Below, in pieces: positions 1 through 58,099 of a DNA stretch of 64,000 nt. A model generated the notes under the pieces. It did no database searches. It was not told the DNA's origin and saw only the letters and a list, made by a program, of their open reading frames with translations. Location of the stretch: the NCBI GenBank assembly GCA_003427395.1, contig BFEA01000036.1, positions 243,148 through 307,147 on the forward strand. The letters run 5' to 3'. Each line of letters begins with the position of its first letter. Positions within the stretch are counted from its first letter, which is position 1. Source of the DNA: Chara braunii (lineage: Eukaryota; Plantae; Charophyceae). Made by a program: the position numbers and the translations under genes.

Positions 1-329
1 GGGGGGGAAGCAAGAAAAAAATGAACAACAAAAAGGAGTGAACGACAACTGATCTTCTGCCACTGAAACAAGAAAAAGCTTATAATTAAAAGGGGGAACA
101 AAAAGTGATAGTCTCCAGCTTGAAGCTTTCAAGGATTTGGTCTTCTGGAATTTGTTAATTTGTCAGAAGTCCTCCTTCAGCAGTTCAGCAGTTTTTCCCC
201 AAAAATAGTTTAGGAATCTTACTCAGACGAAGCCTGGGAATGGCCTCGGTATCTTAAATTGTTTGTACACTTTCATGAGGGTCGCTGGGCCCGCTTCTGC
301 TCCCCACGAATAGATTGGAGTTTCGTTCC

Positions 330-366
<37 letters not shown>

Positions 367-1971: not shown

Positions 1972-2303
1972 TTTTTTTTTTTCTTTTTTTTTTTTAATTA
2001 AAACACCCCTTCCAGTGTTAGTGCTGCTGGTAAGAGCAGACAGCACTACCACCGGCGGAGAGGCTCCATCTATTGGTGGGGAGCGTCACCTGCTGGAAAT
2101 CGGGTCCAGCGTCCCATTTCACATGAAAGGAGTGATTTGGAATATCCAGGGTATGAGTGAGTGGCCGTGGATCCTGCCAGCATTGATTACCCTGCAAAAT
2201 CAGGGGATTGACTGAGCAGGCTTATGTGTAAAAACCAGAAACGTCTTGTAAGTTGTCTGCCAGCATTGATTGCCCTGTCAGATCAGGGGATTAACTGAGC
2301 AGA
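1972..2303 (-). mobile_element. 5'-truncated retroposed 3' end carrying the pseudoknot/hairpin module
   Basis: Poly(T) on + strand at 1972-1995; 16-bp TSD GGACCGTTTGTGCCCC at 1956-1971 and 2304-2319; module at ~2002-2115. Confidence 0.9.
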
Positions 2304-3925: not shown

Positions 3926-3957
<32 letters not shown>

Positions 3958-5080
3958 CAAACCAGGGATGAGGCGCTGGTAGGAGCAGACACTTCAAACT
4001 TCCTAGGAGGAGGCTCCATCTATTGGTGGGGAGCTCCCTGCCGGGAAACGGGCCCAGCGTCCCTTTATACAGTTGTACATTGAGAAAACAGGGACCAGTT
4101 GGGGACCAATTGGAACACACGGGGGGATCACCTCTTCAGTCTGAGAACAGACCGCCTCTAATATTCAATGGGACGCTAGCTACTCCCCCTTTCATTCATT
4201 GTAAGTTGGGGGATGTCGAGGGTGGCCACATTCATCCTCCTCCCTTTGGATTCTAAACCCCTAGACTCTACACCCTTGGGTGCCCTTGATTGGCATTGAT
4301 TGCCTTTGATTGCCCAGCACTGAACCCTCACATTTGTAGGCTGTGACAGCCGTGACTTTTGACTGTACATATCAGCGTTCACCACCCCTGCTCGTTCCTG
4401 AGTTGTTGAATGTATTGTTGATTGGTGACAAGGGTGGCAATATCCATCCATCTCCTTTCGGAATCCCAGCCCCTAAACCCTTGTATCCCAGAGCACAGAC
4501 CCCTGTGGTCATACAGACTATGCTGCAGTGACATTGAGGCTTCGTCCTTCTTGGAGCGCAAACAGAATCTTAGGGGTGGGGGATCTTTGGAAACAAGCAA
4601 AGGGGGACTGGAAGCTGGAGCAGCAGATGTGCACATCACTGAGGTACTACTATAAAAGTGGAGAAAACTTGGATTTCCAAACCACTAGCCTGGGTGGTAA
4701 TACTCTGAAAGGGGCCCACCCTGGAGGAGAGTGACGGGGAGGATTGGCAATATTTTGGAAACCAGAACAAATGAAGTCTTGGTGAACTTCATCAACAGAA
4801 ACAGAGTAACGTCGTACCTAGGGTTTTCCCAGAAGGAGGTGAGGTGGCTGGCTCAAGGCAATGTCTACCGAATAAGCATATTGCTGCTATTGCATGATAA
4901 GGACCAGTGGATTGCCTTTCAGCCCAACATGCCTATTACCGGTTTGGCTATAGACCACGTGTGCTGGCAGTGAGCAATCCGAGGCACAACCAGCTAAAAC
5001 AGGAGCAGACAGCTATTCAACCTTGAAGTTAAGGCCACCTATCAAATGTTGAGAGCCACTGGAAATCTACCGGACACAGT
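2860..5080 (+). pseudogene. Decayed LINE ORF2 fragment (RT motif to post-RT region), interrupted by an antisense insertion
   Basis: SFTDDLTLMV...INW...WWIH and ...KNRIL|xVGDLW segments align with the 5399-9892 LINE protein; many stops and frameshifts. Confidence 0.85.
3928..4559 (-). mobile_element. 5'-truncated LINE 3' UTR inserted antisense into a LINE fragment
   Basis: Poly(T) 3926-3951; TSD AAACAGAATCTT at 3916-3927 and 4560-4571; pseudoknot/hairpin module at ~3960-4063. Confidence 0.9.
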
Positions 5081-5134
5081 AAGTACCACGTCGTTGAAGC
5101 ACTTACATGGAAGAGACCATCTCAGGCCAATTAA

Positions 5135-5251
5135 ACCACCAGTACCTACCGGCTGAGGCGGCCGTTAATGCAGAAGCCAAATCGGCCTGCCCCTCCAATC
5201 CAAATTCATTTGAGGCAGGGGGGTACGAAAAATGTGGTAGGTACTGGTGAT
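5135..5251. mobile_element. TTAA-type (piggyBac-like) MITE
   Basis: TIR ACCACCAGTACCTACC / GGTAGGTACTGGTGAT, flanked by TTAA and CTAA. Confidence 0.75.
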
Positions 5252-5497
5252 CTAAGTGGTTTACCAGGGCCAAACTCAGGGCATACTCACACTATCAAGT
5301 ATTCTCGCAAAATCACAAATTAGACATGATTTTTTGGGTCACAAGGGGCACATATTTTGCGTTATCAGCAGTGTCGCATATGAAATGAGCCAATCATTAT
5401 AATTGAAGGACTATGGCAGTCTCTCAACCTCTTTGATGCATACAGACGTCTTTTTCCGGTAAAACGTAAATTCACTTGTTTTAGGAAGAGCCAAACA

Positions 5498-8400
5498 ATG
5501 AATGCATCCAAATCTCGCATTGATCTCATACTTCTATCAGAAGAACTAGAAGGAGCTCTTCAATTAGCAAAGATCTTCCCTCGAAATGTCTTCCCTAGCC
5601 TTGATCACGCTATGATTGCAGTACTACTTTCTTTCAGGAAAAAGCCGGATCAAGGTAGAGGCTTCTATAAGTTAAATACATCCCTCTTGAGCATTGATCG
5701 CTTCAAAGTATATCTACAAGATGTTTGGTCCTTCTGGAGAGAGCAGAGGGAGCAAATTAGGGACGACATACAATGGTTCAACAACGACCTAATGTTTTTG
5801 GGACGTAAATGCAACGAATATTCAAAAATGCTTGCTGAGCAACGCCATCGTGAGGAATTTGATCTGCAAAAACAACTCCACCAACTTCAAGAACAAGAAG
5901 AGAAATCGGCGGACGAACCTCAATTAACTGAGTTTAACAAAAGAATCTGCGACTTGGAGTCCAAGTTATTAAAATTCATGGAGCACCGTTGGCAAGGGAT
6001 CAGAATTAGAGGTAAGTTGAAGGGTTATAACACGGAGGGGGTGATGGATGCAAGATTTTTTGCCACAGCAAAAGCCAGAACTGGCAGAACTACCATTGAA
6101 GCCTTCACGGACCCTCAAGAAAGCCAATACTCACTAGTCACATCCACAACGGCGTGCACAAAGATAGCAAGAGACTTCTATAAAAACCTTTTTACATCCG
6201 TATGCAAACAAAAACCAAAGGAACAAAGAGTGAAAAAGATTGAAGAATTTCTTGAACCACTAACCAAAACTTTAACAAACCAACAAAAAATGATGCTTGA
6301 AAGTCCACTCACAAAGGAAGAAATTTGGTCTGCCCTGATGATGATGGAGGAGGAAAAAACTCCAGGGATCGATGGACTCCCAAAAGAATTTTGGGAAACC
6401 ATGTGGGATTACCTTGCTCAAGATCTAATGGATTTCTACCATCCAGTCTGGGCCTCAGGCACAATCGGAGAAATAGTTGGACAAGGGGTTCTGACTCTAT
6501 TATACAAAAAATGCGATAAAGCTAACATCCGTAATTACAGACCAATTACTCTTCTCACAATAGTTTATAAACTGGCAGCAAAAGCACTGGCAAACCGAAT
6601 ACTAAAAGTCATCACGGACATCATTCATCCTACTCAAACTGGCTTCATTGAAGGAAGGAACATTCAAGACAATATTTTATTAGTTAATGAATTAGTTAAA
6701 CTCTCTAGACAATCTAAGCACAATGCAGCTTTCATTTTCATAGATTTTGAAAAAGCCTATGATCATGTTGATTGGTTATTTTTAGACAAATGCCTAGAAA
6801 AGTTTAACTTTGGCCCTTGTTTCAGAAGATGGATTGAAATCCTACATACTACTGCTACAACTAGGGTTATGATAAACGGTAACCTGGCTCCGCCTATAGA
6901 GCTAGAACGTTCGGTAAGACGAGGGGATCCAATCGCCCCCTTTCTTTTTGTCATAGTAATGGAAGCTTTAGCAGCTAACTTAAGATGTAACAAAGACATT
7001 AAACGTATCCAGGTTAGCTACATACCAAAAGAAGCCATACCGGTCTGTTCCTTGTTTGCAGACGACCTATCCTTGATGGTTGAAGCCTCGCACAAAAATC
7101 TGTTAGCAATCAAGGGTCTGATGGATAAATTTTGCGCCCTTTCTGATATGAAAATCAATTGGGGAACAAAAACTCAAGGCTGGTGGATACACCATCAGGG
7201 GGTGACACCTTCGGAATATCCAAATATCAGCTGGTTGACAGCAGAGACCCCAATCAGGGAGTTTGGGATCTCACTCTCAGCAAATGGAAAACCAACAGGA
7301 ATCAACAAATGGATATCTAAATCAGCTTTGGCCAAATTGGAACTTTGGAAGGACAAACGAACATCTATTATAGGACGTTCACTAATCATAAATAATGTTA
7401 TTCTAGCCTCACTCTGGTACAAGTCAGCAATATGGCCACTGGACAAATCAGCGCTTAAAACTTCTACAAAGACAAATAACAGCCTATCTATGGAGAGGTA
7501 ATCATGACTTAAAAAATATCATAAATAGAGTTGTCTGGCAAGGAGTTATTCAACCTAAAACAAAAGGAGGGTTAGGAATCTTAGACCCTTCCACTCAAGC
7601 CATGGCGCTCTCAATCCAATGGATCAAAAGATTACTTTTCAACCCAGAGACTCCTTGGACAACCCTAGTTGAGGAACAAATAGCGAGATTAGCCCCTGAA
7701 GTCCCAGAAGGGACTGATCCATTGATATGGCTAGAAAATCGTCATTGGTCCATTCCAAAAGGTAGAACTCAGCCCTCAAGCCAGCCAGAGAACCCAAATC
7801 GTCAAGCCACAAAAATGGACATTAAAAATGATCCCTTTTGGCCTGACCTCCTTAAGACCTAGCGCAAACTACCCTTACCAGATAAAATCCCTCCAAACCG
7901 TTGGGAGGAGGTCTGCCAGCAACCTCTTTTCAACAACAGATGGTTAACATCACAAGGAAGGATGTTCCATTGTATGGATTTCCCCTGGAGAGGTTGGGTA
8001 AAAAAAAAGGTCCTAAGGATTGGGGACATCTGGAACCCAGAAACGCGAGACTGGTACTCTTTTTCTAATCTCTTGCCTAACTTGCGATACTGCAGGAGAA
8101 CAAAACAATCACTAGACATAATCACAGAAGCCATCCCGATAGATTGGATAAAAATCCTCAAAAAAGGTTCCCAACTTAAAGAAAATGATTGGGTGGGCAT
8201 CCAAGGGAATTCCCAACAAATAAGAAATGTAGTATTAGTAAATGATGAGGTATCAGTCTTGCTCTCCTTATTCTCAATCAATCACAAATACCGACTCACT
8301 GAAAGTCACACTAAGGAAACTGAATGGTTCAATGCTGACCAAGTATTCAGGATCAGAGTTTTGACCACTGGATGGCCTTCATACCATCATGTGCAATCAA

Positions 8401-9388
8401 AAAATTGGCTCTAGATCCCATTTATTGGTCTTGGACCGTCCCTTTGGGCAAACATAGAAAGGGCACTCGCAATATTCACTCACTGACAGTTAGATCAACG
8501 TACCGCATGTTGAGGCCTACACTGGAATTGAAAGATAGAATAGAAACCAGGTGGATGAAACAGCTAAATGTAAGCACGGACAATCTGAGACGTATCAAGT
8601 GGTTCAAAACTATTAAGATTAAACCGACAAGAATTGTCTCCCTACAGTGGCAAATCGACCATCGATGCCTTCCCACGAATGATTGGCTAATAGATAGGAC
8701 CTCGCTGGAAGAGAAGGGTATCGCTCTACCTTGGTGCAAGCTATGCTTCTCAACATTCCCATCTAGGACCATTCCAGAAACCATCGAGCACATCTTTCTT
8801 CAATGCCCAGGTTCAGTTTGGTTATGGCGTTGGTGGGACAAGATTTGGAATTCTTTTAATACACCCATAAACTGGCCTTGGGATTGGCGAGCTCTGTTAT
8901 GCGAGACATGGTCTCCAGACCAATTAGACGATTTCTCCCAAAACCTATTTATAACCGGAAGAAGAGCCATTCTCTGGGCCCTCTGGCAACGGCGCTGTAC
9001 TTTTGAAAGGGAGGGTGCCAGGCTGGATGGTCCAGACTTACGGAGTCCATTAAACTACAGGTGCAAACTGTTATCACAGCTATATGGGACAAAGTGAAAG
9101 AAAAAATACAATTTCTGATGAATAAAAAAGAAATCCAACAACACATCAAATCATTCAGTGGCGAAAGGAGGTACGATTGGAAAGATCAAAGAAAGTGGGG
9201 TGAGGAGAGAGAACAAAGAAGAGCATAGCAAAGGAATTCAAAAAGACTACCACCTGATATTCCATGATTGGACAAATGTGGATCCAACAGTACCACTTCG
9301 CCCTCTATCAGAGTTCCCAGATCCCTTCCCACCCTCATCATTATCCCTAGTCCCCATAAGTTGGTTCGGATACGGAAGAGGAGAATAA
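5498..9388 (+). pseudogene. LINE ORF2: AP-endonuclease C-terminus, reverse transcriptase and CCHC (zf-RVT) region; frameshifted
   Basis: SRIDLILLS/SLDH (APE); KTPGIDGL, NYRPITLL, DFEKAYD, RRGDPIAP, LFADD (RT); CKLC...ETIEHIFLQC. Disrupted near 7470, 7860, 8380 and 9050. Confidence 0.95.
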
Positions 9389-9742
9389 TTGTATGTTGTA
9401 ACCAGCTAAATAACATTGTTGTTTCTGGTGAACAGACAAGGCCGAAGAGGCTGATTTTTGTGGTGGACTAGAAGGGTAGTAGAACTATAGGAAGGGCGGT
9501 TTTTCAGGGTGACAGGGGAATTTGTAGGAAAGATAGGGAGTCTGGAGCGATTGGTCATAGTCTCCAACAAGATATCTGTACGAGTATTTCGGATTGTTTC
9601 AGAAGTGGGATATAAAAGGTAATACTGCTAGGATACCATGGGCATCTGGCGGCCAGGCTCTGGCTGAAGAAGCAGTACTCCTTTTTCTTTATACTTCCCA
9701 TATTTCATGTTCTTGAATCATGTATCACTATTACCTGATTGA

Positions 9743-9853
9743 GGGACGCTGGACCCGTTTTCCAGCAGGTGCAGCTCCCCACCAATAGACTGGAGCCAGT
9801 GGTTGAGCTGCTAGGGGTGGATGCTCATACCAACACCACTAACAATCTCAGCC
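9743..9853 (+). other. Conserved structured LINE 3' end: double pseudoknot plus hairpin
   Basis: GGG-AC-GCTGGA-CCC-GTTT-TCCAGC-A-GGTG-CA-GCTCC-C-CACC-AATAGACT-GGAGC, then a hairpin with TG-CTCATAC-CA apex, directly before the poly(A). Confidence 0.75.
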
Positions 9854-10499
9854 GGTTTTTCTTAAAAAAAAAAATAAAAAAAAATAAAAAAAGAGCCAAT
9901 CATTGTGAAGTTCCATACAACACTACGGCCTACCCTACTGGACCGCCCTGGGACTGGGGACTTGTTGGGACCCTGGGACCGGGACTGGGTGTCTGCCGCG
10001 TGAATCCTTTCACATACACCAACGGTCAGCGCCCTGTGACTGGTCAAACTGACCAGCCGAGCGGTCAGCTGATGGGCACCTACTCGTCGGAGGTTGTCGG
10101 CACCCCGCCAAAAAAAAAAAAAAACCCTGTACTCAAACACCAGCCGGCTAGGTTCCATGACTGAGCAGCACTGAGTAGGTGCTGGGTTCTAATCCCATTG
10201 CCGACACTTTTAGTGGCCTAAGGAGGATGGCCAGGGCCAGTCAACGCTGGTAGCTCATTGGGGTGAGTTGTGCCGCCCTGTAACCTCTGGCAATGTGGGA
10301 GCATCAGGCCAGGTGGAAGTGGCTGCTCAGGTCTAACTGCAGCTGATCGGGACACACCCAATATCTCATCTGGAATTCTCAGTCACAATCATCATAGCTG
10401 ACATTAGCCAATCAGGGTTGAGACCCTGAATTCACTTCAGGGAGCTTAAACTCTCAACATACCTGTCATAACAAAAACTCAATAACCAATAATCATGAC

Positions 10500-16065: not shown

Positions 16066-19000
16066 ATGGGGGACAGCACAAGGAACAAACAACCCAACCC
16101 AAGTCGTAAAACGTGGGGACTCTGCAAGTGGGAGCTGGATCGGAAAATCGTGTCATGGGACATTAATGGCATACCTTCCCTCTTGACCAATCAACGTAAA
16201 TGGGATATCTTCTTAAAAGAATAGGACTGGTTTGAGAAATCACCACCCAATCTACTATGTATTTAGGAAAGCCATTTGACAGACTCAAATGAACACCAGT
16301 CTATCCGAGATCAATTAACTAAAAAACTCAGATGGGTCAAGGAAGTACTATGGGCACCGTCCCCCCACCTGCACTCAGCAGGCGTCATTATTCTGATCCA
16401 TGCTAAAACCAAAGCTTCAAACAAAATACTCACAACCTCGACAAGGATAGACTCTCAAGAAGGCAGATGGGCAAAACTAAATTTCCAGCTTTTAGAAGAA
16501 CACTTTAGACTAATCACCATCTACTGCCCGAACACACTTACCCATAGGAGAAGGTTCCTAGAAAACCTATCCCCCAAATGTGATCCTCACACACACTTGA
16601 TCCTAGCAAGGGACTGGAACGTCACGCTGGACCCAACGAAGGACCACATATCAGGAGGCCAGATGGGTACAAAGAGCACAGCCTGGAATGAGCACTCCCA
16701 ATTCACGACCTGCTAACTGAAAGATTCTCATTGATCCCTACAGAGGTAAGCACCCGGACAGCAAAGAGTTTACATACATCAAAAGAAATCGAAGTCAGCA
16801 CATTTCAGCCTCAAGAATATATGTTTTCTTAGTCACTGAATCACTATTAGGGACTACTAAATGCCAAAATCGAAAGACTTCCTTCCTACACAGGTCTGGA
16901 TTACAAGTTGACCACAATTTCACAAGGCATAGGCATCTCCCCAAATAAAGGCCGCAATTTCTTTAAAATAAACAATTCATTACTACAAACACAAGAAATA
17001 AGGGAAGTCGTAGGTGTTGGGGACTCAGCAGTGATCGGGGAGCCGACGGGAGGCTGCATGCACCAGGTTCAGCCAACTCGCCGACGTGGTGGCCTCGCAA
17101 AACTCACTCAAGACTAGGCTCAGGAGGGATAGAAAAAGCAACCTCAACCATACCCACACATGCACTGTAGGTCTCGTCACAAGTCCGGTGCTACCTGCGC
17201 GCATGCGGCTCGGAGCCCCCCCCCCCCAACTCAGAGTCTTTCATCCCCCGTAGCATCCCTGCTGGGAGGCATGATGCGCCACGGTCAGAGGGGTGTTGAT
17301 AGGGACGATCGACCCTGCTAGGAGAGGGTCGCCCGATCGCTCCCGACGGGACGCCATCACCACTAAGTCCACCCCTTTTAGGGCTGAATCCCCCCATGGT
17401 CTCAACAACCCCGAAGGGAGTAATAGCAACCATTACGGCGCTCAAGGTGCCGCATGGAGTCCGCAGACCCGGACAAACTGAACCTTATCCAATCACATGC
17501 GCCCTTAAGAGCGCTTGGTTGCTACACTCAGTGTGCGAATGACATGTGTGTCCTATTCAAAGCCCGTCGCCGGCATATGCACGAGGCCGTGGAGTTTTGA
17601 ACCCACGCCCTCTGGCCACACATGCATTTCCAACCGTTTCCCTAACCACTGGGCTATCATGCCATTCCCGAAGTTATAATATCAACCTGCATTAAACATG
17701 AAAACTCCAACGCAAAATTCCCCGACCTAGTAATGGCCCTGACAGAAGCAACGGCCAAAACCTGAAGGACCCTTGCAACCAAAAGAAAGGCAAGGGAAGA
17801 GGAACTACAAACGACTTTAAAAATAGCGGAAAAGAATCTCAAGCAATTCAGGTCATAGCCTATACAAAAGAGTACTCGAGCAGACCAGGCAGGAACTATC
17901 GGAATGGGAAGACTGAAGAAACAAGGGACTGCGAATGCGAGCAAGAATAAGAAAATGGGAAGAAGGGGAAATTATGACCAAATATTTCTTCCACAAAATC
18001 AAGACGAATGCCAGGAACACACACATCGACCAACTACGAACGGACCAGGGTTTAACATCCAATCCACAGCAAATCCTAGAATCGGCACCGGCCTTCTTTA
18101 AGGACCTCTACACCTCCAAGGAACAAAACGGTAAACAGCAATAAACAACGCAAGCTAGAAACAAGTTCCTTACCTATCTCGATAAAACAATCTCAACCGA
18201 ACAAGCTGCAACACTAGACACCCCAATCACAGAACAAGAAGTTTACGAAGCACTGCGATCGATGAAACTCAACAAAACGCCAGGTATAGACGGCCTCTCC
18301 AAAGAATTCTGGATGACCTTCTGGCCAGCGCTGGGGACAGAGTGCTTCCAATTCTTGGAAAGAGCGTGGGAGGAAGAAACTCTAGGAGCTCTAAAGTACG
18401 GGGGTGGTCTCTCTCCTATACAAAAAGGGCAACCCGACAGACATTAAGAACTATAGACCAATCTCTCTCCTAACAGTCACGTACAAAATCCTAGCTAAAC
18501 TACTAGCCAACAGAATCAGAACAATAACAGCAAACTGCTTTCACCTGGATCAGACCAGATTCATACCAGGCAGATTCATTCTGGACAACATTATCACCCT
18601 CTCAAAATCTGTAAGATACATTCAAGACAAGAGAATGAACGCAGCCATATTATTCGACTTTGAAAAGGCCTATGACCAAGTCAACTGGAACATCCTTCAA
18701 CAAAGCATGAAAAAGATGGGGGTAGGCCCAAACTTTAGGAAATGGGTCAGAATCCTCTACGCGGATGCCCACAGGCGGGTGCAAGTCAACGGGCATATCT
18801 CCCAGCCCTACCGCATGTCACGCTCAGTACGACAGGGGGACCCACTAGCAGCACATATTTTTTTGTTCATCATGGAAGTGATAGCATCATTCCTACGTAA
18901 GGACCCCTCGATAGAGAGACTCATGGAGGAGGGCCACCACACGATAAGCCTCCCCACCACCATTCTCTTCGCCGGTGACTTAACAATGCAAACGCGCCTC

Positions 19001-21240
19001 AGACTCTTCTTTGAGGCGCTGATGCGAGCAATGCAAGCATTTCAAATAGCTTTAGAAATGAAAATCAATTGGCCCAAGACAACATGATAGTGGTTAACTT
19101 ATCCTCTTACCAATATACCCCTAAGCACACCAGAAGGAATTGAATGGTCCAGACTCCAAAGGCAACCAACCCCTCCATTTCTTGGGCATCCAGGTGTCCA
19201 AGGCAGGACCCAACCACTCAATGGCCCCAACAATTATGTGCAAGATGATCGCCAAACTGGGAAGCTGGTCCAGTATATACACTCCAATCTTCGGACGAGC
19301 CCTAATCCTCAATGCTTCCACCTTCTCCATGTTATGGTACGCAGCGACGATATGGAGCTCCCCCAAGCAACTAAGAACCCAACTCAGAAGGAAAGCGGCA
19401 GCCTACCTCTGGTCCGAGGACCCTTCCAAAGCCCACTTTATCCCCAAAGTAGCGTGGAAGTATATCATCATGAAGAAGTCCAAAGGAGGTTTGGGAGTGC
19501 TCGATCCGGAAACACAAATTAAAGCCCTACAGACGAAATGGATCCTCAAAATCATAACAAATGAAAACCTACCTCGGGTCGAACTAGGTTTGCGTAGAAT
19601 AAAACAGATGGCCAAACTAAAAACTCCGGATAACATGATGGGTCTGTTCTTAATCATGGCCAAATCATGGACCATAAAAAACCCAGACAGCGAAGCGGAG
19701 CAAGAGGAACAGGTCACAGAATATAACCAGGACTTCTGGCAGCAACTCCTAAAAAATTGGAGGGAAATATTCTTAGCCAAAGAACCCACAGCGAAGGAAG
19801 AGGTTCTAAGACAGCCTACTTTCTGTAATCAGTGGATTCTTGACAAGCAGGGGACCTGGACACTCACAGCCAAGGACGCCAAATAGGTCACATGGGTGCG
19901 AAGAGGTGTATGGCAAGTCAAACACCGATGGCAACAGTAAGAGAACTGCGTCCAAACTTGAAGGGCTGTCACAATTTACTGGAGAACCTAAATGACATCC
20001 TAACCTCAATCCCTAACAACTGGCTAGATCTACTATTAAAGGGCCCCTCCCAATGGAAAGCAGGTGACTGGGCCACAAGCACAGCAACTGTGCTTCCAGA
20101 TGTGGCCTACCTATTCCGCAAAAGAGAGGGACCAATGAACACCTGGCTCATCTGTGACATGTACCCAATCGAGGACTCAGGAGCGACCACAAGTCTTCTG
20201 GGCAAGGACCCAACATGGGAGAGAACTTTATCGGACAATGCAGTAAGGAAAATAAGAGTAGTCGAGAATGTACAGCGAAGAATTTATGACCCATCAACCA
20301 GCATACTAGATCTAGAACTCAACCCAGCAGAATGGGCCTGGAAACAAAAAAACAGGAAGGCTCAAACTAGAAAAGCGCACTAACATTTTAGAATATACCA
20401 CAAAACTGGGTTACAACCTAAGAATGAGATATCAACTGATAGCACAGATCAACAGTCATAGATGGGAAACTCAACTTAATCAACCACCAGATCGAACCAA
20501 CATTACGTCATGGAACAAAACTCTCGCCATCGCCTCCACCAAGATACGGAGTTTCCAATGGCAACTTGCATACCTAGCCCTTCCAGTCAACCAATGGTTG
20601 AATAAAAGGCACAGTACGCAGTCAAGACCGCCCCTACAGGAACTGTGTGCCATCTGCCAAGAACGCCTCGTGGAGGATGTGGAACACTGTTTATTGTCCT
20701 GCCAAAAGGCCAAGCAGGTCTGGTCCCGCGCGGCTGAGCTATGGCACTCGAGAACAGGCAACCCTGCCATCGGACCTAGTCCCCACCCTCCTGGGACTCC
20801 ACACACCCTCCGCATGGCTAAACTACGAACACACATTCTTCCACACACTGAAGATTAGCCACCCTCTGGATGATATGGAAACGACGATGCCAAGAAGCAA
20901 TTGGCCACACAACAATGGCAACCCAAGAAACGTGGGAGGGAGTATTAAAACAAGTGGAAGTGGAATACAGAGGACGATGGCACAAAACAGTCTAAATCAT
21001 TGAAAGGAACGTAAAAAACAAAGACAAAATAATATAGCAATTCACAAAACAGAAACTGGGAGATGGAAAAATAGCAACAATCATCAACAACAGAATACTA
21101 TTCGGACAATGGAGACACTGCAATATACAACAACAAACGATCTCGGAGATACCAGGAAGTATAGCATATACCCCAAGTGCGGCAATAGACGCAAGCTAAA
21201 ACCCAAGCATAGATCACCAAAGGTAGGGAAAAGCACGACA
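16066..21240 (+). pseudogene. LINE ORF2 (APE-RT-CCHC), inactivated
   Basis: KIVSWDING, SAGVIIL, IYCPN, RDWNV (APE); KTPGIDGL, NYRPISLL, FDFEKAYD, VRQGDPLA, FAGD (mutated FADD); CAICQ...EDVEHCLLSC. Confidence 0.92.
17013..17669 (-). mobile_element. tRNA-derived SINE inserted antisense into LINE ORF2
   Basis: Minus-strand head GGCATGATAGCCCAGTGG (A box) ... GGTTCAAAAC (B box); degenerate TSD GAAGTCGTA/GAAGTTATA; ORF2 reads across once the insert is removed. Confidence 0.8.
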
Positions 21241-21846
21241 GAAGACAAAGATGACTCCTCGACGACACAATCAGAACAAGGTTATAAGAACAAGGTTATA
21301 AGAACAAGGTTTTAGGATTTAGACAGAGTCAAGGGTTTAGAGGCTAGACAGAGCCAGGGCAAGTGAGGTAAAGATAAACCGAGGATAGACAGACAAAAGT
21401 TCGGGCTTCAGACACTCGGGATAAGCATGGTTTAGGATTCCAGAATCCCAAAAAGTCCGCAAGAGCCCCAGACCGCTCTAGCATAAAACATCGACCCTGC
21501 AGCATTACAGCTGAGAGGAGCAGGACTGCGGCCAAACGGATCAGCAAGGGCCAACCACAATAAGTAGTGCAGGCTAACTTAAGCTGGGGTGAGGGGGGTA
21601 CATCCTTCCACACGGAAGTAATCAATGCCGTCCACTCGGGCCTCCCAGCCATAATGGGAAGGAGTGTGCGTGAGTCTCCGCTGTATTCCATATTGACTTA
21701 CCATGGAATAGGGACCAGGAGCCAGAACCATGAGGTTCTGTTCTATTAAAAAAAAAAAAAAAAGGAAGGGCTCTACCTAATTTCACCACTTCATTCGTAG
21801 GCAAACTGTGTGAAAAAAGGCAAGGAAAGATCACCTCCAGAGTTTT

Positions 21847-22645: not shown

Positions 22646-24551
22646 TTTTCCGAGCCATTTTTCTCCAATGCAGCTGCACGGATGCCACGTCTGGCAGGAT
22701 TCACCCGCTTGCCACTTTGCTTGGCAAACCTCCAGGCAAAATGAACAGCGCCGAGGTCCTGTTTTACCTGGCCATGCATCCTGTCCGACGCAGCAAGCAT
22801 GCAGCCGCGTTGGAGAAAAATGGCTGGGAAACATACTGGTTGTTTAAGCAAAAGCCAGGTATGGGCCCTGATATCATCTTTATGTTTTTTTGTTTATTGT
22901 AACATCACAGTCCTGCAGCATCTGTGACATCTAGCCCAAGCTGTGTAATGGCCCCAGTAAACTCCTGCTCTTGTTGTGTCTGCATGGGACGCTGGACCCG
23001 GTTTCCAGCAGGCAAGGCTCCCCACCCACAGACTGGAGCAAAGGTCCTGGGAGCACTATTTGGAGGTGCTCTTACCACACCAAAAAAGAGTGCAGCTCCT
23101 CTGTCCTGGTGGTGGTGAGAGATATCTTTGTATTCCAAATTCATCATGGAAGCCTTGGGCACTAGGCCTGTTTTTGCCAAAAAAAAATAAAAAAAAATGG
23201 ATTCAAAACTCAAGAGAGATTCATACCAATTTTTTTAACGATCACTGATTAACACCAGGACGAGATAGATGATTGATTCTAACATCGTAATTACGAGAGG
23301 TTCAGTAAGAGCAACAAGGGAGGAGGAAATATGTGAACAGATGACCAGCACCATTGATAATGAGTATGCTCACATTCCATAGAGAACTGCGGGCACAAGG
23401 GTTTCCTGGTTACCTGTTTGTGGAAGCAGCAAGGAAAGTTTCAAGAAAGGTGGGAGGGAGGGTCTGGGACGGGCTCACGTCGCACCTGGTACGACTGTAT
23501 GGGGTACACCACAGGGACGGCGTACAGCAGTACAAGAAGAGACCGAGGAAAACTGCTGATACTACCTGCAGAGAACGGAAGATTCAGTGCAAAAACACAG
23601 GATTTGATATCGGCCATGTAATCTGAGCCTTCGGCACGTAGCGATTGATGACGTACGCCATGGCGGTAACGACCACATGAAAGTACCTCAAGAGTCTCGA
23701 CAGATATCTGGACTTGAAATACAGGGCGGCTATCCGATGGGACCAAAAAAATGTTTTTGATCGCACAGTGATCTTTTCAGCGTAACCTTCATAATTTTAT
23801 TTTCTCTTAGTTACCAGAGGGCCTATGCAGATCTGCATGGTGCGCAGGTCTGGACTCTGAAGATAAAAGGATTTGTTTTTTGCAAACGTTTACGCGGGGT
23901 TACCCATGGTAGTGAGTTCTTCACTAGTGCTTAAAGAGGAGCCGAGGGAGTACTCGGCAGCAGTCTGTGCGAAACGGGGTAGAAGGCTGTTGAGGCGTGT
24001 GGAACACCATGCTACAAAAAGCCTACAATGTAATTTGTTTTGTGATAGGTAAACTCCGAATTACATTGTTTTTACGATTCCTCTATATTGCCTTCATTGT
24101 TTTTACGATTTCTCTATATTGCCTTAAAAAATTGGGTAGGGATCTCCATGTTTTTTTCTTTTTGTTGTTGTTGGCAAAAACAGGCCTAGTGCCCAAGGCT
24201 TCGATGATGAATTGGGAATACAAAGATCTCTCTCACCATCACCAGGACAGACGAGCTGCACGGTGACATTGAGGGGAAAAACAAAAAAAAGATGATCAGG
24301 GCCCATACCTGGCTTTGGCTTAAACAACCAGTATGTTTCCCAGCCATTTTTCTCCAACGCTGCTGCATGCTTGCTGCGCCGGGCGGTATGCACTGGCCGA
24401 ACATTTTGCTAAGAACACCGAGTGCGACTCGTTTTTCCTGGAGGTTTGTCTTGGAAAACATTCAAGCAAAGTGGCAGGCCGGTGCGTCGCGCCAGATGCG
24501 ACATGGATGCAGCCGCCTCAGAGAAAAATTGCTGTGAAATGTACTAGTGGT
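22646..24551. repeat. Inverted duplication (22646-23237 vs 24123-24551) of a MITE plus retro-tail composite
   Basis: The same junction (MITE end, CCAGGTATGGGCCCTGAT, GCCTTGGGCACTAGGCCTGTTTTTGCC, A-tail) appears in both orientations; complete TTAA MITE at 24324-24551. Confidence 0.85.
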
Positions 24552-29379: not shown

Positions 29380-30800
29380 TTTTGTCAGTGTTGTGATGAG
29401 ACCCAGATGCGCATACCCACCAATGACGGGATAATTGACTGGACGAGGCTGGAACAGAAAGGCGTGACACTCCCGTGATGCTGGTCATGTCAGAAAAACT
29501 TCCCGTCCCACAGTCTCCAAGAGACAATAAAACACTTATTTTCGCAGTGCCCCGGAGCAGTCCTCACACGGCGATCGTGGGAAAGGATATCGCGCCAGCT
29601 AGGAAGAGAATCCACTTGGCCATGGAACTGGAAAGCATTACTTTGTGGGACATGGTGCTCTCCACAGGACAGAAATTTTGAGGAAAATAATAAAATATGT
29701 ACAAAGGATGCTTAAGTATGTATCTTAGATGCCGTGCCCAGTTTCCAGCAGGTGACGCTTCCCACCAATAGACAGGAGCAACCAGCATGGGGGCTATGAG
29801 AGGGAGATGCTCATCTCACTCCCACTAGTAAACTCAACAATATAAACAAAAAAAAAAGAAAAAAAGGGAGAGGAGCCTTCCTCTGGGCCCTTTGGCAGAA
29901 GAGACGCACACACATAATGGACGGGGAGTATGCACGGAAGGCGAGGAAATCACAGACACAGTTAAACAGCAGATCCAGTTAACAGAACCATGCCTGGAAA
30001 CAAAAGCAAAATTCCATCTTTATCAGGAAAGAAAAGGCATAATGTCATAAACCAAGCAATAAAAACTTTCTCAGAGGAATGGCTGGGTGGTGAACAAGGT
30101 GGCAGGATTGCAAACATTCAATGGGAGGGCGGGAGGCAAACAGACGCAGAGACACTGAAGAGGGTGTACAAAATAGCCTTCAATGACTGGACAATGGTGG
30201 ATGCAGCTGTCTTTTTCTTTTTTTTTTAACTAGGCCTTGGCTGCTAGTGATGATGGTAAGAGCAGCAATCACTAGCAGCCCAACCAAGGACTTCCCAGAT
30301 CTCTTCCCACCACACCAACTCTGTTAGTGGATATGCAGTGGTATGGACTCTGGAGGCATTCAAGATCCTACTTCATGAGAGTGCAGGCAGAGATGGTTCT
30401 TTCACTCTGGCAGCCAGAGACAGGCTGAAGAGGCTGAGCACTAGACCCTCAGTTGATCCCCTGGCAGAAGCAGTGTAATTGATGCCGTAGACCTTAAGGG
30501 GAACATAGAGACATACACGTGGTTGAGAAGAAAAATGTAAGATGAATCTGGGATGCTGGACCCGGTTTCCAGCAGGTAATGCTTGGCCACATTGAAACAC
30601 TGCTTGCTGGCCTGTCCAATGGCCCTTCAACTGTGGCACTGGTGGGATGTTCTATGGGAGGAACTCACCAGCTCACCATTTTTCATTGAAAGCTCATCTG
30701 GTTGGTCAAACTGTCAGACTAACCACCACCATGGTCAGGTTTCCAGCATAACCTGTTTCAAACAACCAGGCTGGCCGTACTGATGGCCATCTGGAGGATG
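29380..30800 (+). pseudogene. Scattered LINE ORF2 C-terminal fragments with nested small insertions
   Basis: RCIPTN...LEQKG, FLWALWQ, FNDWTMVD and LKHCLLACP..LWHWW segments. Confidence 0.75.
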
Positions 30801-43430: not shown

Positions 43431-45001
43431 AAGTTGTAGTTCATCTTCTCATCATCAGTAAAGTAACTCAAGTTAAGTCTTTGAGTTGAACAAAGTAAGA
43501 ACTGTGAACTACAACTTCTAGAAGTTGTAGTTCATCTTCTCATCATCAGTTAAGTAACTCAAGTTAAGTATTTGAGTTGGCATTTTGTCCATTCCTCCCG
43601 TGTTGCAGTGTGCGTGCGTGGTTTTCTGTCATTTGCCCAATTGCAGTGTGCTGTTTTGCTGGCTATGCAGTGTTTCTGTGTCTGCATCAGGTAACAAGTA
43701 ATAACAAGTTAACAGGTGAGTACCCTGCCACACTGCCTGCCCCGCCAATGCAATTGCTACAGTCACGACACCGTCACTTGTTTCATAAGACGAGTCTTGT
43801 GCGTACCCCCCTACATTTGCCAATAGTTCGCAACTTCGGACCCCTCAGAGGTGTGCACTCCCCACCAACAATGCCCCCCACCCAGCGGAACCTCAAAAAA
43901 AAANNNNNNNNNNNNNNNNNNNNNNNNNNNNNNNNNNNNNNNNNNNNNNNNNNGCGGGGAAGGCACCGCTCCAGTCCCGGACCAAACCGCACCGGACAGA
44001 AGAGTACCGCGTCGTACCCCATCTGGCCCCGTCCGGTCCGGTCCGGTCCGGTCCGGCTCTGTCCGGTCCGGCTCTGTCTGCTTGCAAGTATGCTTTGAAG
44101 TCATGCCCGTGCGGGCCCAAATGTTATAGGAAAAGGGGGAAAAAAAAAAAAAAAAAAAAGACATGAAAAGTTGAAAGCCCAATAAAAAATATTCCACCAT
44201 CTGCTATCAGCTGTGTGACCACGCTAATACCAAATGGACCAATTTTCAGCAAGTTGGGGCGATGTATCATTCACAAAGGCAGCCGTGTGTGAGTACGCAC
44301 CACAGCTAAACCTCAAAATCGCAGTTGCAAAACTGCAGATGGAGCCTCTCCTCCGGTGGTAGTGCTGTCTGCTCTTATCAGCAGCACTAACACTGAAAGG
44401 GGTGTTCTTCTAAAAACAAAAAAAAACAAAAAAAACAAAAAAGATTATGCAATTTTGCTATTCATGTGTGAGTATGCCCTTAGGGTGATAAAGTGCTCAC
44501 ACAGCATCCAGACAAACGATAGAGGTACAACTGCAGGGCCCTCCAAGGAGTATACCTCCCCGTGGGGAACAGGGGCCATTGGTGGAAGGCAAAAAGAAGA
44601 ACCAGATGTGGCAGCTCGGAAGACTTGAACACACGGATAGTAAGACAGGGGACAATATGTAAGAGATCTGCCAAGATGCTGGCAGGGACTGGATTAGTCA
44701 ATTAAATCTGTACGGACAGAGAGGACTCGGTGCACCCCTGTTGTGAGGGGTGAGCAGTTAATCCACTCTTAGGACAAATAATGCTAGCCACCACACAAGT
44801 CTGTTAACTTCGCTTCGCTGTGTATTTGTTGTTGTACAAAGGGGAAGGACCCGGTTTCCAACAGGTGAAGCTCCCCACCAATAGGTTGGAGTCGTCACAC
44901 AGAAGGCCTACTACAGGCGGTTGAATGTATCACCTCCAGTAATAGGCCTTCAACAGATTCTTTAAAAAAAAAACAAAAAAAACAGCAGGTTGAACCGTTG
45001 A

Positions 45002-45272: not shown

Positions 45273-46785
45273 ACCACCTTCGTCCTCAAACACTAATATT
45301 CCTTCCACAAACCCGCTTCCAGTGCTAATCCTTCCCGGATCTCTGGACAGCCGGGACATCCCAGTGAGTGTCAGACCTGAAAGAGGTTGAACTCTAACTT
45401 CGCTGATTATATAGTGAGGTCAACAATCAGGGAATATATACTTCGACCCAAATTCCTGAGTTCCAAAAGCCGCTACCCTTCAAAGGGCACCACTTGGACT
45501 TCCCAAAGCTTCAAAAGAAAAGAGTAAAGCTACCTACAGGGCCGAGAAGAATGCCGAAGCAAAAAAAAGGGGGGTTACCAACTCACAGTGCAGGTAAATC
45601 CCTTAGCGAATGGAAGAGGTCTGAGGATCAAAACTTTCCATCTAAAACCAAAGCAAAGAAAAACAGAAAAAACAAAACTCCTGAGGGTACCTGTGCCGAG
45701 GCAAAAACAGTGGGCTAAAACAGCACTACCGGGTGGAATAGCACACCACACCGATGTTCACAGATACAGGATTCACCTTGTAACCAAACAAAGCCACACC
45801 AAACGAGGCCTGTGACCATGGCTGAGGTACACAAGTGAAATAAATTGGCGCGTATCATCGAAGTCGATCCTCCTCCAATGGTCGGAACCACTTGTAAGAC
45901 CAAATTATGCATCTCCAGGCTGCCATCACGCCAAGCACTACCCTATTTTTCAGACATTTGCACACAACTCAGAAGACGAGGGGAATTACTGACACTTAAT
46001 TCGCAGCCCAATAAATTTCAACATCCAGCTCAACGGAGGTTAAAGCATCGCTCCAAAGATCACCTTGGAGGGCCGCTGGACCAGGCTTCCTGCAGGTGAT
46101 GCTCCCCACCAATAGACTGGAGGGATCTCTGGTGGGCGTAGTATTGGAGGATGCTCATACCACTCCCAATAACATGCCCTAGCAGATATTTGAAGAAAAA
46201 AGAAAAAAGAGGTTGCAATCCACATAAGCACACAGGACACAGGCCAGGGGAGGGCTTGTGGAGGGCTTGAGCTCTTCCCCATTGGAATACCCACATCCTG
46301 GCACAGCAAAACACCAGTTGCCGTAGTGTAAATGTGTGCAAGATCCAATTAAAAAGTGCCACTAAGACACCCAAACATGCTCACTCGTCCCGGCAGCTGA
46401 CTCCAGGATAGTTCGCACACGCTATGCACAATCTATAGTGGGTTTTTACTCCTTGCCCAACAATTCTTCACAGGCCTATCTTCTGAACTTTGGAGTTCGT
46501 ATCCAACAGATCTAAGAGACAAGGGGCTTTTGTGCTCAGAGACCAGAGAGTAAATCAGGACTGCAAGTTCCAAAAGACTTTTGCACCACCTTTCGACCCC
46601 TTTCCTGTTCAAAAGCAAGTACTGCGCTTACTGATCTAAGGTCTGAGGGTAGGTACATTGGCTCTAGGGATATGGGCGGGCCCTACAGAATCAGGGGGGG
46701 GGAAAGGAAAACGACTGCACAAAATGCAAAGCCACCCACATTACCAACCTGCTGGGGCAAGATCGCACTCGTCCAGATTTTTCAC

Positions 46786-47232: not shown

Positions 47233-47914
47233 ACCCAAGGCTAGGCAGAACTCAGACTAGCCAGAGCGGCTTATATCCCTACCCCTGCCCTAGATCTAAG
47301 CCATGCGTAAGTAGACCCCGTCATATACCTGATAGACCCCCCCAGCCCTGTATTGTAGTTGTGTGTATGTGTGTGTGCCCAGAGGCTATGTATTTTGTAT
47401 CTGCCCATAGGGCCATGTGTTTTGTATCTGCCCGAAGGCTATGTGTGCTCTGTGTAACTGTATAGCGAGATGTTTGTGCCCGAAGGCCAGATATGTGCAG
47501 TCTATGTGTGCTCTGTGTAACTGTATAGCGAGATGTACGTGCCCGAAGGCCAGATATGTGCAGTACTATGTAGAATGTTCGTTTGAAGAGACGACAGGCC
47601 AAGCTGGACAAGAACCCCCCCCAAAGTCCCAAGCCAGACTCAAACCCGTGATCTATGGCATGTGACCTGAAGACTCTACCAATCGCAAGCGGCCCCTGTG
47701 TGTGATATGCCAGACTGGGAAGATCAACAGAACAACCACGAGCAACAGCCACAAGCAACCCACACAGCATCAAGACCCGACATACAACACCATGGACAAC
47801 CCTTGGGTGGTGCGCAGGCAGTGCCTGTATAAGCTTACCGTGCGTCAGCCCAAGGGAATGTGTGTCCAGCCGTGCATCATTCTAACGCCCTGCCAGTGTC
47901 CATGCGCAAGGCTG

Positions 47915-47992
47915 CAATTGAGTTTTGAACCTACAACCTCATACCACAATGCGCATTTCCAACCAGTGCTCTAACCACTGAGCTAACATCTG
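47915..47992 (-). mobile_element. tRNA-derived SINE head (same family as 17013-17669)
   Basis: TAGCTCAGTGGTTAGAGCACTGGTTGGAAATGC...GGTTCAAAACTC. Confidence 0.75.
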
Positions 47993-48689
47993 CTGGCCAG
48001 GCTAGCGGAGGTGATATGAACAGCCCCCACTAGCCTCCCCGAGGATGTGTCCAGTCTTTTTTTTTTTTTTTCCCCAAATCAGTCGCTCCATCTATTGGTG
48101 GGGAACTGCACCTGCTGGAAAACAGGTCCAGCGTCCCTGGCTCCAGTCTATTGGTGGGGAGCAGCACCTGCTGGAAATCAGGTCCAGCATCCCTTCCAAA
48201 GCATCGAGAACATTATGATGGTCTGGAAGAACATATGAGGTATCAATATGGCCGCCTCACAACTCTGGACCATCCTACCCTCCCCTATCCCCTTTGCTAG
48301 TGTCCCCTGGAATACAGCGCCCCCCCACCCCAACCCTTTTTCCCTACCGAGATATCCCTGTACCCAATCCCACACTCTCATATGTCCTGGCCACACCACT
48401 CTGGTTCCTACCAGAGCCATTCCTGCCGGCGGGAGCATGTTGGAAACTCCTCCGGCGCTCTCGTGGGAATACTGGGATCTACCTGTAACCAATCGTGAAA
48501 GTGAAGCTTGTCGTCTTTCAGCCGGGGGATCCCCTCCCCCTCCTTCCCTGCGCATTCTACCTGGGCCATCCACCCTCCTCTTTCCCCACCCAGCCACCCT
48601 GCGCAGAACGGTTTTATTTCCTTACAGATGTCTGCTTTTTGTGTGAGATTCTACATTCTTTCCTGAGCCTTTTTCCACCGGATTCTTAT

Positions 48690-50050: not shown

Positions 50051-50269
50051 GACCTCAAACTTTTTGTAATGCTCAGGCAAATCTTGTTTAGTTTATTTTT
50101 CTCCATAACATATCTTTTTTTCAGATTATTTTGACGACTTTTTTTTTTTTTTTTTTTTTTTGTTGGGTCCGCATTCGGCCCGAACGGTCGAACGCATCCC
50201 CAAGGGATCCCATACGTTCAAGCGTTCGGGTTCGGGCGTTCGGCCCGTCCCGAACACCGTTACCCTGAT

Positions 50270-51778: not shown

Positions 51779-51878
51779 ATGTTGGTTATTCCGGGTAGAC
51801 TGTGAGGACCCCGGCCTCGATGCTCTCAAATATCAATACAAGCCTTGGGCACTGGGCCCTTCTTAAAAAAAAAAAAAA
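50270..51878 (+). mobile_element. Poly(A)-tailed non-coding retroposed element with two Alu-domain-like modules
   Basis: Two G-rich ~400-bp repeats, modules at 51346-51397 and 51476-51535, (CAT)n, tail GCCTTGGGCACTGGGCCC followed by poly(A). 5' boundary approximate. Confidence 0.75.
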
Positions 51879-53411
51879 CTTGCTTTGAAAGATGGGATGC
51901 TGGACCCGGTTTCCAGCATAGGGATACTTGGCATCAACCAGCCAACAGCGGTATAGGAGACATAGAGAGGGAGACTATGTTGCTATAACTTGCACCGAAA
52001 AGGGACACTTTACCCGGTTTCCAGCAAGTGCTCACCAAATAGATGGAGCCTTCACCAGGAAGGCCACTTTAGGGGGATGCTCGTACCACCTCCTAAAATG
52101 TGGACCTCCACTCTAAATTTATAATGAAAAAAAAAACGTTTCCCAGCTATTTTTTCAGAGATGAAGCTTGCATGCTGCCTTTTTTTCAGATATGCAGCTT
52201 GCATGCTGAGGCAACTTTCAGGAGCTTGGCTCCCGGAGCAAAATGGTTGGCAGCATCAGCCAGAAGGAGGCCTGCACCAGTCCTTTTACTTACACAACAC
52301 ATTTCCCACCCTGGAGAAAAGTTCCTCAGTATTGGTGGTGATCTTGTCCATGTACATTGCTGCATCCAGAAATGTCAATCAGTATGCGATGGGTTGTGAT
52401 CCACCACTCTCAGAACCACAGGAAATCAAGGGTGGTTCAACAGACCTCAAACATGAAAAGTGCTTCTTCACTGATGAAACAACTACATCTCAGTCAAGGT
52501 TTGAGTTTCTTATACGCAGGAAAAAAAAAAAAACCCACTAAATGCAGTTTTGTCGCGGTGGGAGTTTAAAATGCGCAAAAAGCGTAAAAATATTGTTCTT
52601 TTAACTTTTATTTATTTTGCCGTTTTTTAAACTCCGGCCCTTTGCACACCACCGCCCGCCCCGGTAGTTATGGCATCTGCGCCTATTAGAAAGTACCAAA
52701 CCTCATTTATTGCCTTTTCAAACCTGGCGTGATTGACCTGCTGGTATATGTTTTGTTTCGCGAGTTGGCTCTTCATTTTGGTATTCTTTTAAAGGTGACA
52801 GTCTTGATATAGATCCACAGGCCACCGGCCTCAGGGGCTGGGTCCCACCAACCGTGTGACACATTTCAAGGGAATAAATTGCAAAGCGTGAGCGGCGGTG
52901 AGCCATCATTATCTCGTCAATAGGAGGACAGTCTGACAGGGTGTGTTTGACTCTCATTGTTAAACTTGTTCCTTCTTTTGGGCAACAAATGCACCTGGCC
53001 GACACAGTTGTCCGCATTCATTTCAGAAAAGACCTTCCCTTACCACAGAGTATCTCCCTCAGACTCTGCGAGACACATTTCTTTTCTCTGAACTTTCGAA
53101 AAATCGGGACAAAGCTGGGTCATCATTTCACAATTCTAGAAATAAAAGAAATATAACGTTCTCCACATGAAGTGGGGCAGAAATCTCACAGAAGCAGATC
53201 TTTCCCACACAAACCATGAAACCAAAACATGCCGAAAACAAATTTGAAAAGTAAAAACTCTAGGCAATATTCAAACGCATCTATGGCAGGGGTCTATCCC
53301 ACTTGCCACACGCAATTGAAAACCCAGCGTTGAGGCAGCCAATGGTGCAGGTGGGACCCGGTCCCACGTATGTGGTCCACTGGTGCCTCTTCGGAGAATT
53401 TCCCTACTCAA

Positions 53412-57791: not shown

Positions 57792-58099
57792 CCCCCAGGA
57801 CACTCACTGCTTGATATGTGAAGAAAATAAGATTAGTGACACAAACGTACTTGCCCCTAATCTTATTTTCTTCACATATCAAGCACTGCTGCCCTAGGAT
57901 AGGCCCGTGCCCCCAGGACACTCAATGCTGGCAGGCTCCTCACAAGTCCATATTCTTTCGTAAAAAGGGACACTGGACCCGATTTCCAGCAGGTGTAGCT
58001 CCCCACCAATAGATGCAGCCACCCGTGGCAGCTACAGGTGACTGCTCTTACCAGCATCTGACGCTTCCTAAACAGATTTCCACCCTTTGCCACACTTTT

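Follow-up and report, generated by a model that had tools for sequence, protein, structure and literature searches.

In a 64,000-nt stretch of Chara braunii DNA (the window), ten sites had been singled out from the sequence alone as hairpins with largely different stems and one shared apex, lying directly before an A tail. The site at 9798-9853 raises the question to which element such a hairpin belongs and what keeps its apex constant while the stems change.

The hairpin lies at the end of a LINE 3′ UTR

Upstream of the site lies a LINE coding remnant (Table 1). Its RT ORF matches Pfam RVT_1 (E 1.8e-29), and the closest relatives are Chara braunii CBR_g8636 and CBR_g31387 with 60-66% identity. 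Domains of the types Exo_endo_phos, RVT_1 and zf-RVT, which together make up plant-type L1 LINEs, are present in more distant relatives. The downstream ORF gave a weak zf-RVT match (E 0.0019) that is below the curated cut-off. An endonuclease was not found in the coding remnant of this LINE copy, which is 5′-truncated or decayed. The last coding remnant ends about 700 nt before the flagged stretch, which is followed by GGUUUUUCUU and an A tail and is therefore the last part of the LINE 3′ UTR.

The tail runs from a conserved box through the hairpin and a G/U-rich linker into the poly(A). The box yielded 41 nhmmer matches in about 300 kb of Chara DNA, and its majority frequency is 0.8-0.99 over most columns (23 tails). 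Other copies carry a linker tract of similar composition, for example GGGGUGUUUU or GGGUUGUUCU. The hairpin is the last element ahead of linker and A tail in 17 of the A-tailed copies; RT-coding remnants are found upstream. The claim that it stands directly before an A tail could be maintained in part: an A tail is close by in seven of the ten listed copies, but there is none at 23067 and 58043, and a T run follows after 55264. This T14 run (55297-55312) is not a poly(A) of the tail at 55242-55296; on the minus strand it is the A14 tail of another element, which suggests a tail-to-tail insertion into an earlier A tail.

The same layout would fit a role in 3′-end formation, with hairpin and linker defining the cleavage and polyadenylation site or shielding the 3′ end from exonucleases. 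In the A-tailed copies, the end of the hairpin and the A tail are always 8-25 nt apart, the G/U-rich tract that follows is of conserved composition, and most copies contain no AAUAAA-like signal between hairpin and tail. However, stability or processing alone does not need a loop conserved base by base, and other Chara retroposons reach their poly(A) via quite different hairpins. We therefore regard a function restricted to the 3′ end as unlikely. As a specific candidate, the ENE of plant transposon RNAs, which clamps poly(A) in a triple helix by a U-rich internal loop between stems near the 3′ end, was rejected, since the internal loops of the Chara hairpin are 1-2 nt long and not U-rich, and Rfam gave no match.

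A third conserved module was observed 40-100 nt upstream of the box. It reads CCUGCUCAGUYAAUCCCCUGG-(4)-CAGGGYAAUCAAUGCUGGCAGG and forms a nested hairpin with two AAU-rich internal loops. It is duplicated in the window copy 2170-2302 (-) and also lies upstream of the box in the copies L003 21590, L004 13685, L003 59575, L001 13726 and L001 53841.

Table 1. Features of the flagged LINE tail, hairpin copies in the window and other Chara tails. Positions refer to the window unless a locus (L001-L004) is named.
Feature	Position	Strand	Evidence
LINE coding remnant, incl. RT ORF 5498-7501 and C-terminal ORF 8372-9097	4911-9094	+	Pfam, tblastn map
Conserved 3′ UTR box GGGACGCUGGACCCGnUUUCCAGCAGGUGnnGCUCCCCACCAAUAGAUGGAGCC, directly 5′ of hairpin	9743-9797	+	nhmmer, majority frequencies
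Hairpin	9798-9856	+	
Outer stem, 5′ strand GGUUGAG	9801-9807	+	pairs with 9847-9853 in MFE and centroid folds
Inner stem, 5′ strand UAGGGGUGG, alignment columns 13-21	9812-9820	+	pairs with 9833-9841
Single bulged nucleotide directly 5′ of UG	9821	+	RNAalifold leaves column 22 unpaired
Conserved apex UG-CUCAUAC-CA; 7-nt loop 9824-9830; free position N 9827	9822-9832	+	logo
Inner stem, 3′ strand ACACCACUA	9833-9841	+	fold, covariation
Outer stem, 3′ strand CUCAGCC	9847-9853	+	MFE and centroid folds
G/U-rich linker GGUUUUUCUU, between hairpin and A tail	9854-9863	+	
Poly(A) tail, A11-T-A9-T-A7	9864-9892	+	
Copy, stem UAGUGCUG/CAGCACUA, loop CUCUUAC	2006-2060	-	CM 62 bits, fold z -4.2
Copy, loop CUCCUAC	3955-4009	-	CM 43 bits
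Copy, stem UUUGG/CCAAA, loop CUCUUAC, without A tail	23045-23099	+	CM
Decayed copy, loop CUCAUCU; LINE C-terminal remnant 29413-29712 just upstream	29786-29840	+	CM
Hairpin and A tail without box	30232-30286	-	CM, fold z -3.7
Short 5′-truncated copy, subfamily of 2006-2060, loop CUCUUAU	44348-44402	+	CM
Divergent copy, apex drifted to UGAAUGUAUCA	44900-44954	+	CM
Copy, loop CUCAUAC	46130-46184	+	CM, fold
Hairpin, apex UGUUCAUAUCA, between A15 run and tRNA-like sequence	47990-48044	-	CM
Copy, stem UUUAGGGGG/CCUCCUAAA, loop CUCGUAC	52056-52110	+	CM, fold
Copy, stem UAGGGGUGC/GCACCCCUA, loop CUCUUAU	55242-55296	+	CM, fold
Copy, stem CAGGUG/CAUCUG, loop CUCUUAC, without A tail	58021-58075	+	CM
Hairpin-less box tails	275-363	+	
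	48071-48138	-	
	L003 50487-50602	-	
	L003 67516-67587	-	
Second tail type (five in sample)	21700-21763	+	
	L001 5222-5243	-	
	L003 62705-62736	+	
	L001 47272-47313	-	
	L002 21614-21632	+	
Further small-hairpin tails	50139-50161	-	
	51865-51878	+	
	L001 19311		
	L001 22756		
	L001 85073	-	
	L004 18653	-	
	L003 11268		

Collection of hairpin copies

Altogether, 27 sense-strand hairpin copies were collected from about 315 kb of DNA of one species, Chara braunii, and 13 of them are located in the window. The additional DNA consisted of four Chara braunii assembly loci (237 kb; L001-L004) and three BFBZ01 contigs. An HMM of the box was built so that the loop would not be judged on copies ascertained via the loop, and a covariance model (CM) of the hairpin was built and searched alongside it. 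These searches added three decayed copies in the window (those starting at 29786, 44900 and 47990 in Table 1) and 14 copies in other Chara braunii DNA. The three BFBZ01 contigs, which are Chara-like DNA with two more copies, came from a metagenome scan with a 20-base box pattern; four other matches to this pattern are high in GC, probably bacterial, and were discarded as chance matches.

The stems and loops quoted in the sequence-only reading are all present in the sequence as given. Allowing up to one mismatch, TGCTCNTACCA occurs 16 times in the window compared with 3.7 expected, and none of 100 shuffles reached 16. Ten of the matches are the sites listed before; the other six, including the one at 47967, are at background level.

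Two further arrangements were observed among the copies. The copy at 30232-30286 (-) is probably a 5′-truncated insertion of about 65 nt. At L001 20235-20840 (-), a box-like sequence and a hairpin with the perfect apex UGCUCCUACCA are present twice, about 550 bp apart and with no A tail; this duplicate looks like part of a tandemly repeated unit.

The stem varies and keeps pairing

For the seed alignment, 17 copies were arranged ungapped and anchored on the apex, and RNAalifold was run unguided. It returned an inner stem of eight consecutive pairs (columns 14-21 with 34-41; our model adds 13-42, giving nine), the unpaired base 5′ of UG, the U-A and G-C pairs, a 7-nt loop and a partial outer stem. 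In the seed copies 82.0% of the cells pair, compared to 66.1 ± 1.6% in partner shuffles, and none of 500 shuffles was as high. Fourteen of the 17 pairs change on both sides and are thus compensatory, and sliding the partner by 1-3 columns lowers pairing to 34-58%. Ten held-out copies, which had not been used to derive the structure, gave 75.9% against 62.8 ± 2.5% (0 of 500 shuffles as high) and the same contrast to the slid controls. The hairpin with its bulge 5′ of UG, as proposed from the sequence alone, was hence recovered without guidance, and its pairing exceeds both the shuffled and the slid controls.

The variation within this frame is considerable. In the 27 copies, 22 distinct sequences were counted for the 9-nt 5′ strand of the inner stem, and the stems still pair. 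The pair 21-34 beside the bulge is kept in 24 of 27 copies and switches between U-G, G-C and C-G. The description of the stem as freely covarying goes too far: the base of the stem is semi-conserved (CUAG...CUAG/CUAAC), and stems of the GCUAGUGGUG type are common.

Seven copies, folded as single sequences, gave z-scores of -2.2 to -6.1. The flagged copy folds weakly (z -1.28; 23 of 200 shuffles are as good), and the UG/CA pairs are absent from its minimum-energy structure; the structural evidence thus comes from the family and not from the flagged copy. In the latter, seven of the nine inner-stem positions pair, in columns that covary across the copies, and the bulged base is an A, in most copies a C. 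The two closing pairs (U, G, C, A) are invariant and never covary. An 11-nt conserved apical loop is therefore as valid a description as the 7-nt loop, and the data, which fit both equally, do not fix the exact loop geometry.

The apex is conserved across divergent lineages

The apex consensus of the 27 copies is U-G|C-U-C-N-U-A-Y|C-A. From 5′ to 3′, the logo counts are U 26, G 27, C 25, U 25 and C 22, then the free position N (T 13, A 6, G 4, C 4; 0.19 bit), followed by U 25, A 26, Y (C 15, T 11), C 25 and A 27. All ten specified positions are matched in 19 copies. In the larger sample the loop thus proved to be conserved as had been stated for the first ten sites, and the stems vary and pair. 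The copies themselves are old, divergent lineages, since a blastn comparison of the 500 nt upstream of the box revealed only short motifs common to them. A G at N is found with each of the two main apex backgrounds, (C)UG...CA(G) and (A)UG...CA(C), which shows that this position changed more than once. No covariation of N with the variable box positions (CCCG-N-UUU and GGUG-NN-GC) was seen by eye in this small sample.

The conservation might have no function and merely reflect recent kinship or ascertainment via the loop. Indeed, the first ten copies had been found by eye via the loop, and several copies form one subfamily with the GCUAGUGGUG stem. However, the 23 tails ascertained by the box alone show the same peak: the majority frequency is at least 0.9 across UGCUC, UA and CA and falls to 0.5 at Y, 0.4 at N and 0.3-0.8 in the stems; apart from the apex, only the box forms a conservation peak. 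The many different stems that still pair, and upstream UTRs that cannot be aligned, likewise speak against kinship as the cause, and we consider an apex without function very improbable. The apex is under selective conservation.

Ten positions kept across lineages with unalignable stems and UTRs, one free position N and a constant bulge are the pattern expected for a loop that is read by a protein. The suggestion of a protein-binding loop, one of the two inferences initially offered, is thus a putative assignment that fits the ten conserved loop and closing positions, the single free central base and the bulge. In the Chara sample, the position of the module, its structure, the compensatory change in its stem and the conservation of its apex are established. 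The explanation we favour, with a probability of roughly 0.6, is that the hairpin is a terminal cis-acting 3′ UTR module of a poly(A)-tailed L1-type LINE clade and a putative recognition tag for the ORF2 protein. According to this model, the ORF2 protein or its RNP would dock on the terminal hairpin module, and target-primed reverse transcription of the element's own RNA would then begin at the poly(A) next to it. The helix with its one-base bulge might supply the shape, and the apical UG-CUCNUAY-CA would be read base by base, with one central base facing the solvent. With about 55 nt and ten defined bases, the hairpin is a compact RNA target for binding and retrotransposition assays.

Anticodon likeness and a possible host reader

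One loop that is common to many divergent LINE lineages could equally be due to a shared host factor instead of the element's own protein. The hairpin would then be a landing pad and not an ORF2 tag, and a host RNA-binding protein would read its apex. This protein might be an export or stability factor, a La-like protein, or a synthetase or modification enzyme that reads tRNA anticodon arms. Consistent with this, the apex is kept although the ORF2 proteins are about 35-45% identical within the window and the UTRs are unalignable, and the loop has the generic anticodon-loop signature C-U-NNN-A-Y.

tRNA anticodon loops have seven nucleotides with Y32-U33 and a purine at position 37, and U36-A37 is the context for the t6A modification. 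A precedent for an anticodon-like element in a retroelement RNA is found in HIV-1, where it is bound by LysRS. The apex had been compared to an anticodon loop from the start, and in part this is correct: the 7-nt loop C-U-C-N-U-A-Y has C32-U33 and A37, and four variants read C-N-U as anticodon. Yet these features are generic and expected in about 1 of 16 loops by chance. As a tRNA arm the likeness breaks down. The Chara hairpin has two invariant closing pairs and then a bulge, whereas the tRNA anticodon arm has an uninterrupted 5-bp stem; position 38 is C or U, and other tRNA features are absent. ARAGORN found no tRNA genes in the window and seven loci. Rfam returned nothing relevant at the gathering threshold for the window and no tRNA match with E up to 10 for 9700-9880 on either strand. 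The antisense strand of the hairpin was also considered as a tRNA 5′ half and rejected, the likeness being confined to short pieces (UAG ... UGGUAAGAGCA) without model support.

The weak tRNA likeness argues against a host reader of the anticodon-arm kind, and mimicry of a single tRNA identity set is made less likely by the free variation of the middle "anticodon" base. In addition, no precedent for such a reader in non-LTR elements was found in the literature search. Overall, we think it unlikely that a host factor, in place of ORF2, is what reads the apex. Decidedly less probable is the narrower version, in which the apex is a true anticodon-loop look-alike (C-N-U, A37) that recruits a host anticodon-arm binder marking, protecting or escorting the LINE RNA; if it were true, a retrotransposon tail would exploit the tRNA machinery beyond its own reverse transcriptase.

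Pairing of the loop with a tRNA or SINE D-arm

As an alternative, pairing of the apical loop in trans had been suggested, its partner being the D-arm either of a tRNA or of a SINE RNA derived from a tRNA. The match behind this suggestion is real: the reverse complement of UGCUCUUACCA, UGGUAAGAGCA, is identical at 10 of 11 positions to the D-arm of a tRNA-like sequence on the minus strand at 47967-47977. However, this is one of six matches outside the tails, compared with 3.7 expected by chance, and 10 of 11 is reached only by copies with N = U and Y = C (7 of 27). The tRNA-like sequence at 47967 has one weak relative in 300 kb and is therefore not an abundant SINE here. The free N would moreover face the invariant A21 of the D-arm, which disfavours such pairing, and the D-arm is buried in the folded tRNA. 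With a match at background level, we see hardly any likelihood in this proposal.

Immediately downstream of the hairpin at 47990-48044 (-), the interval 47640-47985 (-) contains two tRNA-like sequences in which A-box and B-box-like motifs can be recognised. There is no A tail between hairpin and pair, ARAGORN did not call either of them, and the sole weak relative in 300 kb is located at 17592-17660. A hairpin preceding a tRNA-like head, as at 47640-48044 (-), is the reverse of the normal SINE order. Nearby, at 47436-47571 (-), a unit of about 64 nt is present in two tandem copies that are about 95% identical.

Comparison with known recognition hairpins

The iron-responsive element, which a single protein recognises, also has a conserved apical loop and a bulged base on a stem whose sequence is free; this is an analogy in design only, since sequence, host and function are unrelated to those of the Chara hairpin.

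Among retroposons, the nearest counterparts are a monocot L1 lineage and the zebrafish L2 tails. The monocot lineage "monocot 1a" with LINE1-1_ZM has a 3′ hairpin ahead of its poly(A) that is shared with ZmSINE2 and ZmSINE3 (Ohshima 2012, PMC3472496; review PMC3747384). The stem of that hairpin varies with compensatory changes and bases in its loop are conserved, which was taken as stringent recognition (PMC3472496). Monocot 1a is an L1-clade LINE of the plant lineage, as the Chara elements probably are, and like them it ends in poly(A) and carries in its last ~50 nt a hairpin with a variable, compensated stem and a few conserved loop bases. The conserved bases differ: a UCU loop and a CGAG 3′ flank in monocots, compared by description and not by sequence, and UG-CUCNUAY-CA with the bulge in Chara. 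The Chara hairpin is also longer (about 55 nt, two-tiered) and is preceded by a second conserved box, and no equivalent of the SINE partners of the monocot hairpin was found in our sample.

L2-clade tails, from eel UnaL2/UnaSINE1 and zebrafish ZfL2-1 and ZfL2-2, resemble the Chara tails in their terminal hairpin, in which the loop bases matter and the stem serves as shape. Zebrafish L2 ORF2 recognises its tail hairpin in two parts, with general binding to the stem and specific binding to the loop (Hayashi et al. 2014, PMC4176376), and experiments have shown that it is the part of ORF2 between EN and RT that binds (PMC4176376). L2 elements are of another LINE clade, and their ends are formed by short repeats, in contrast to the poly(A) of the Chara LINEs. 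Their loops differ between families with cognate specificity, whereas one apex is found across many divergent lineages in Chara. Bombyx SART1 (R1 clade) is of the stringent type and yet poly(A)-ended, with both 3′ UTR and poly(A) needed for accurate initiation (PMC3472496); it is an animal, telomere-specific element, and unrelated to the Chara tails in sequence and structure.

The literature search yielded no description of the apex motif, of Chara LINE tails or of an anticodon-like LINE tail. The kind is already known as the stringent-type LINE tail hairpin, also from the plant L1 clade; the Chara form was not found described. Stringent 3′ recognition has been proposed to be ancestral in green plants and to have been relaxed later to poly(A) alone, in parallel to mammals (Ohshima 2012, PMC3472496). 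A single monocot lineage and a Chlamydomonas pair have so far provided the evidence for this. An intermediate data point is now added by Chara, a streptophyte alga near the land-plant stem, in which many divergent L1-type lineages with poly(A) tails have a structured tail and a precisely conserved loop in common.

The hairpin is one of several tail modules in Chara braunii

The hairpin is a lineage-specific module of Chara braunii LINE tails. Only 30 of the 145 A runs of at least ten nucleotides follow a box-type tail, 29 with a box match and one with the hairpin alone. Four box-bearing tails contain no hairpin and lead straight into long A runs (A11 to A47). Two of them share the variant box CACGAAUAGAUUGGAG and a similar linker of 13-16 nt, so that a lineage appears to propagate without the hairpin; this suggests that the hairpin is not indispensable in every lineage. 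The copy at L003 67516 could alternatively have arisen by a deletion across the hairpin base. A lineage without the hairpin, together with one loop in many lineages, leaves room for an accessory role of the hairpin or for a host reader.

A second tail type was found at the LINE with an RT at 18404-19087, which ends at 21763 with a box-like variant followed by a different hairpin of 7 bp with a tetraloop. Tails of this type consist of GCUCCCCAGAAUGGnaGGAGCC, then CAGAACC-NNGA-GGUUCUG (or CAGGGCC-ANAA-GGACCUG), a short U-rich linker and poly(A), and their box looks like a variant of the type-1 box. They also carry GUAAUCAAUGC, which is related to the third module upstream of the type-1 box. Other retroposons have at least four more recurrent motifs directly before their A tails, each of which contains a small hairpin of its own, for example GGAUGCGUUCRRCCGUUYGG...GACCC, GGCCCGGCCGUGCAAGGRCC..GAAGGYCCC, CCUUGGGCACUGGGCCC and GGUCCnUnGGACCA. 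Several hairpin tails have no coding sequence detected upstream, and these may be merely 5′-truncated.

No SINE partner and no multi-copy non-autonomous family with the hairpin tail was found in the ~315 kb. Of two outgroup LINEs, neither of them informative, one (L005, ENA) has an AT-rich UTR and poly(A) and no such module, and the other (L013, Logan) stops short of a tail. The modular composition of the tails, with box, apex hairpin and other hairpins, could help to classify Chara retroposons. Apart from the retroposons, the window contains a full-length match to U6 snRNA at 63878-63982 (+) with 74.8 bits (E 4e-17).
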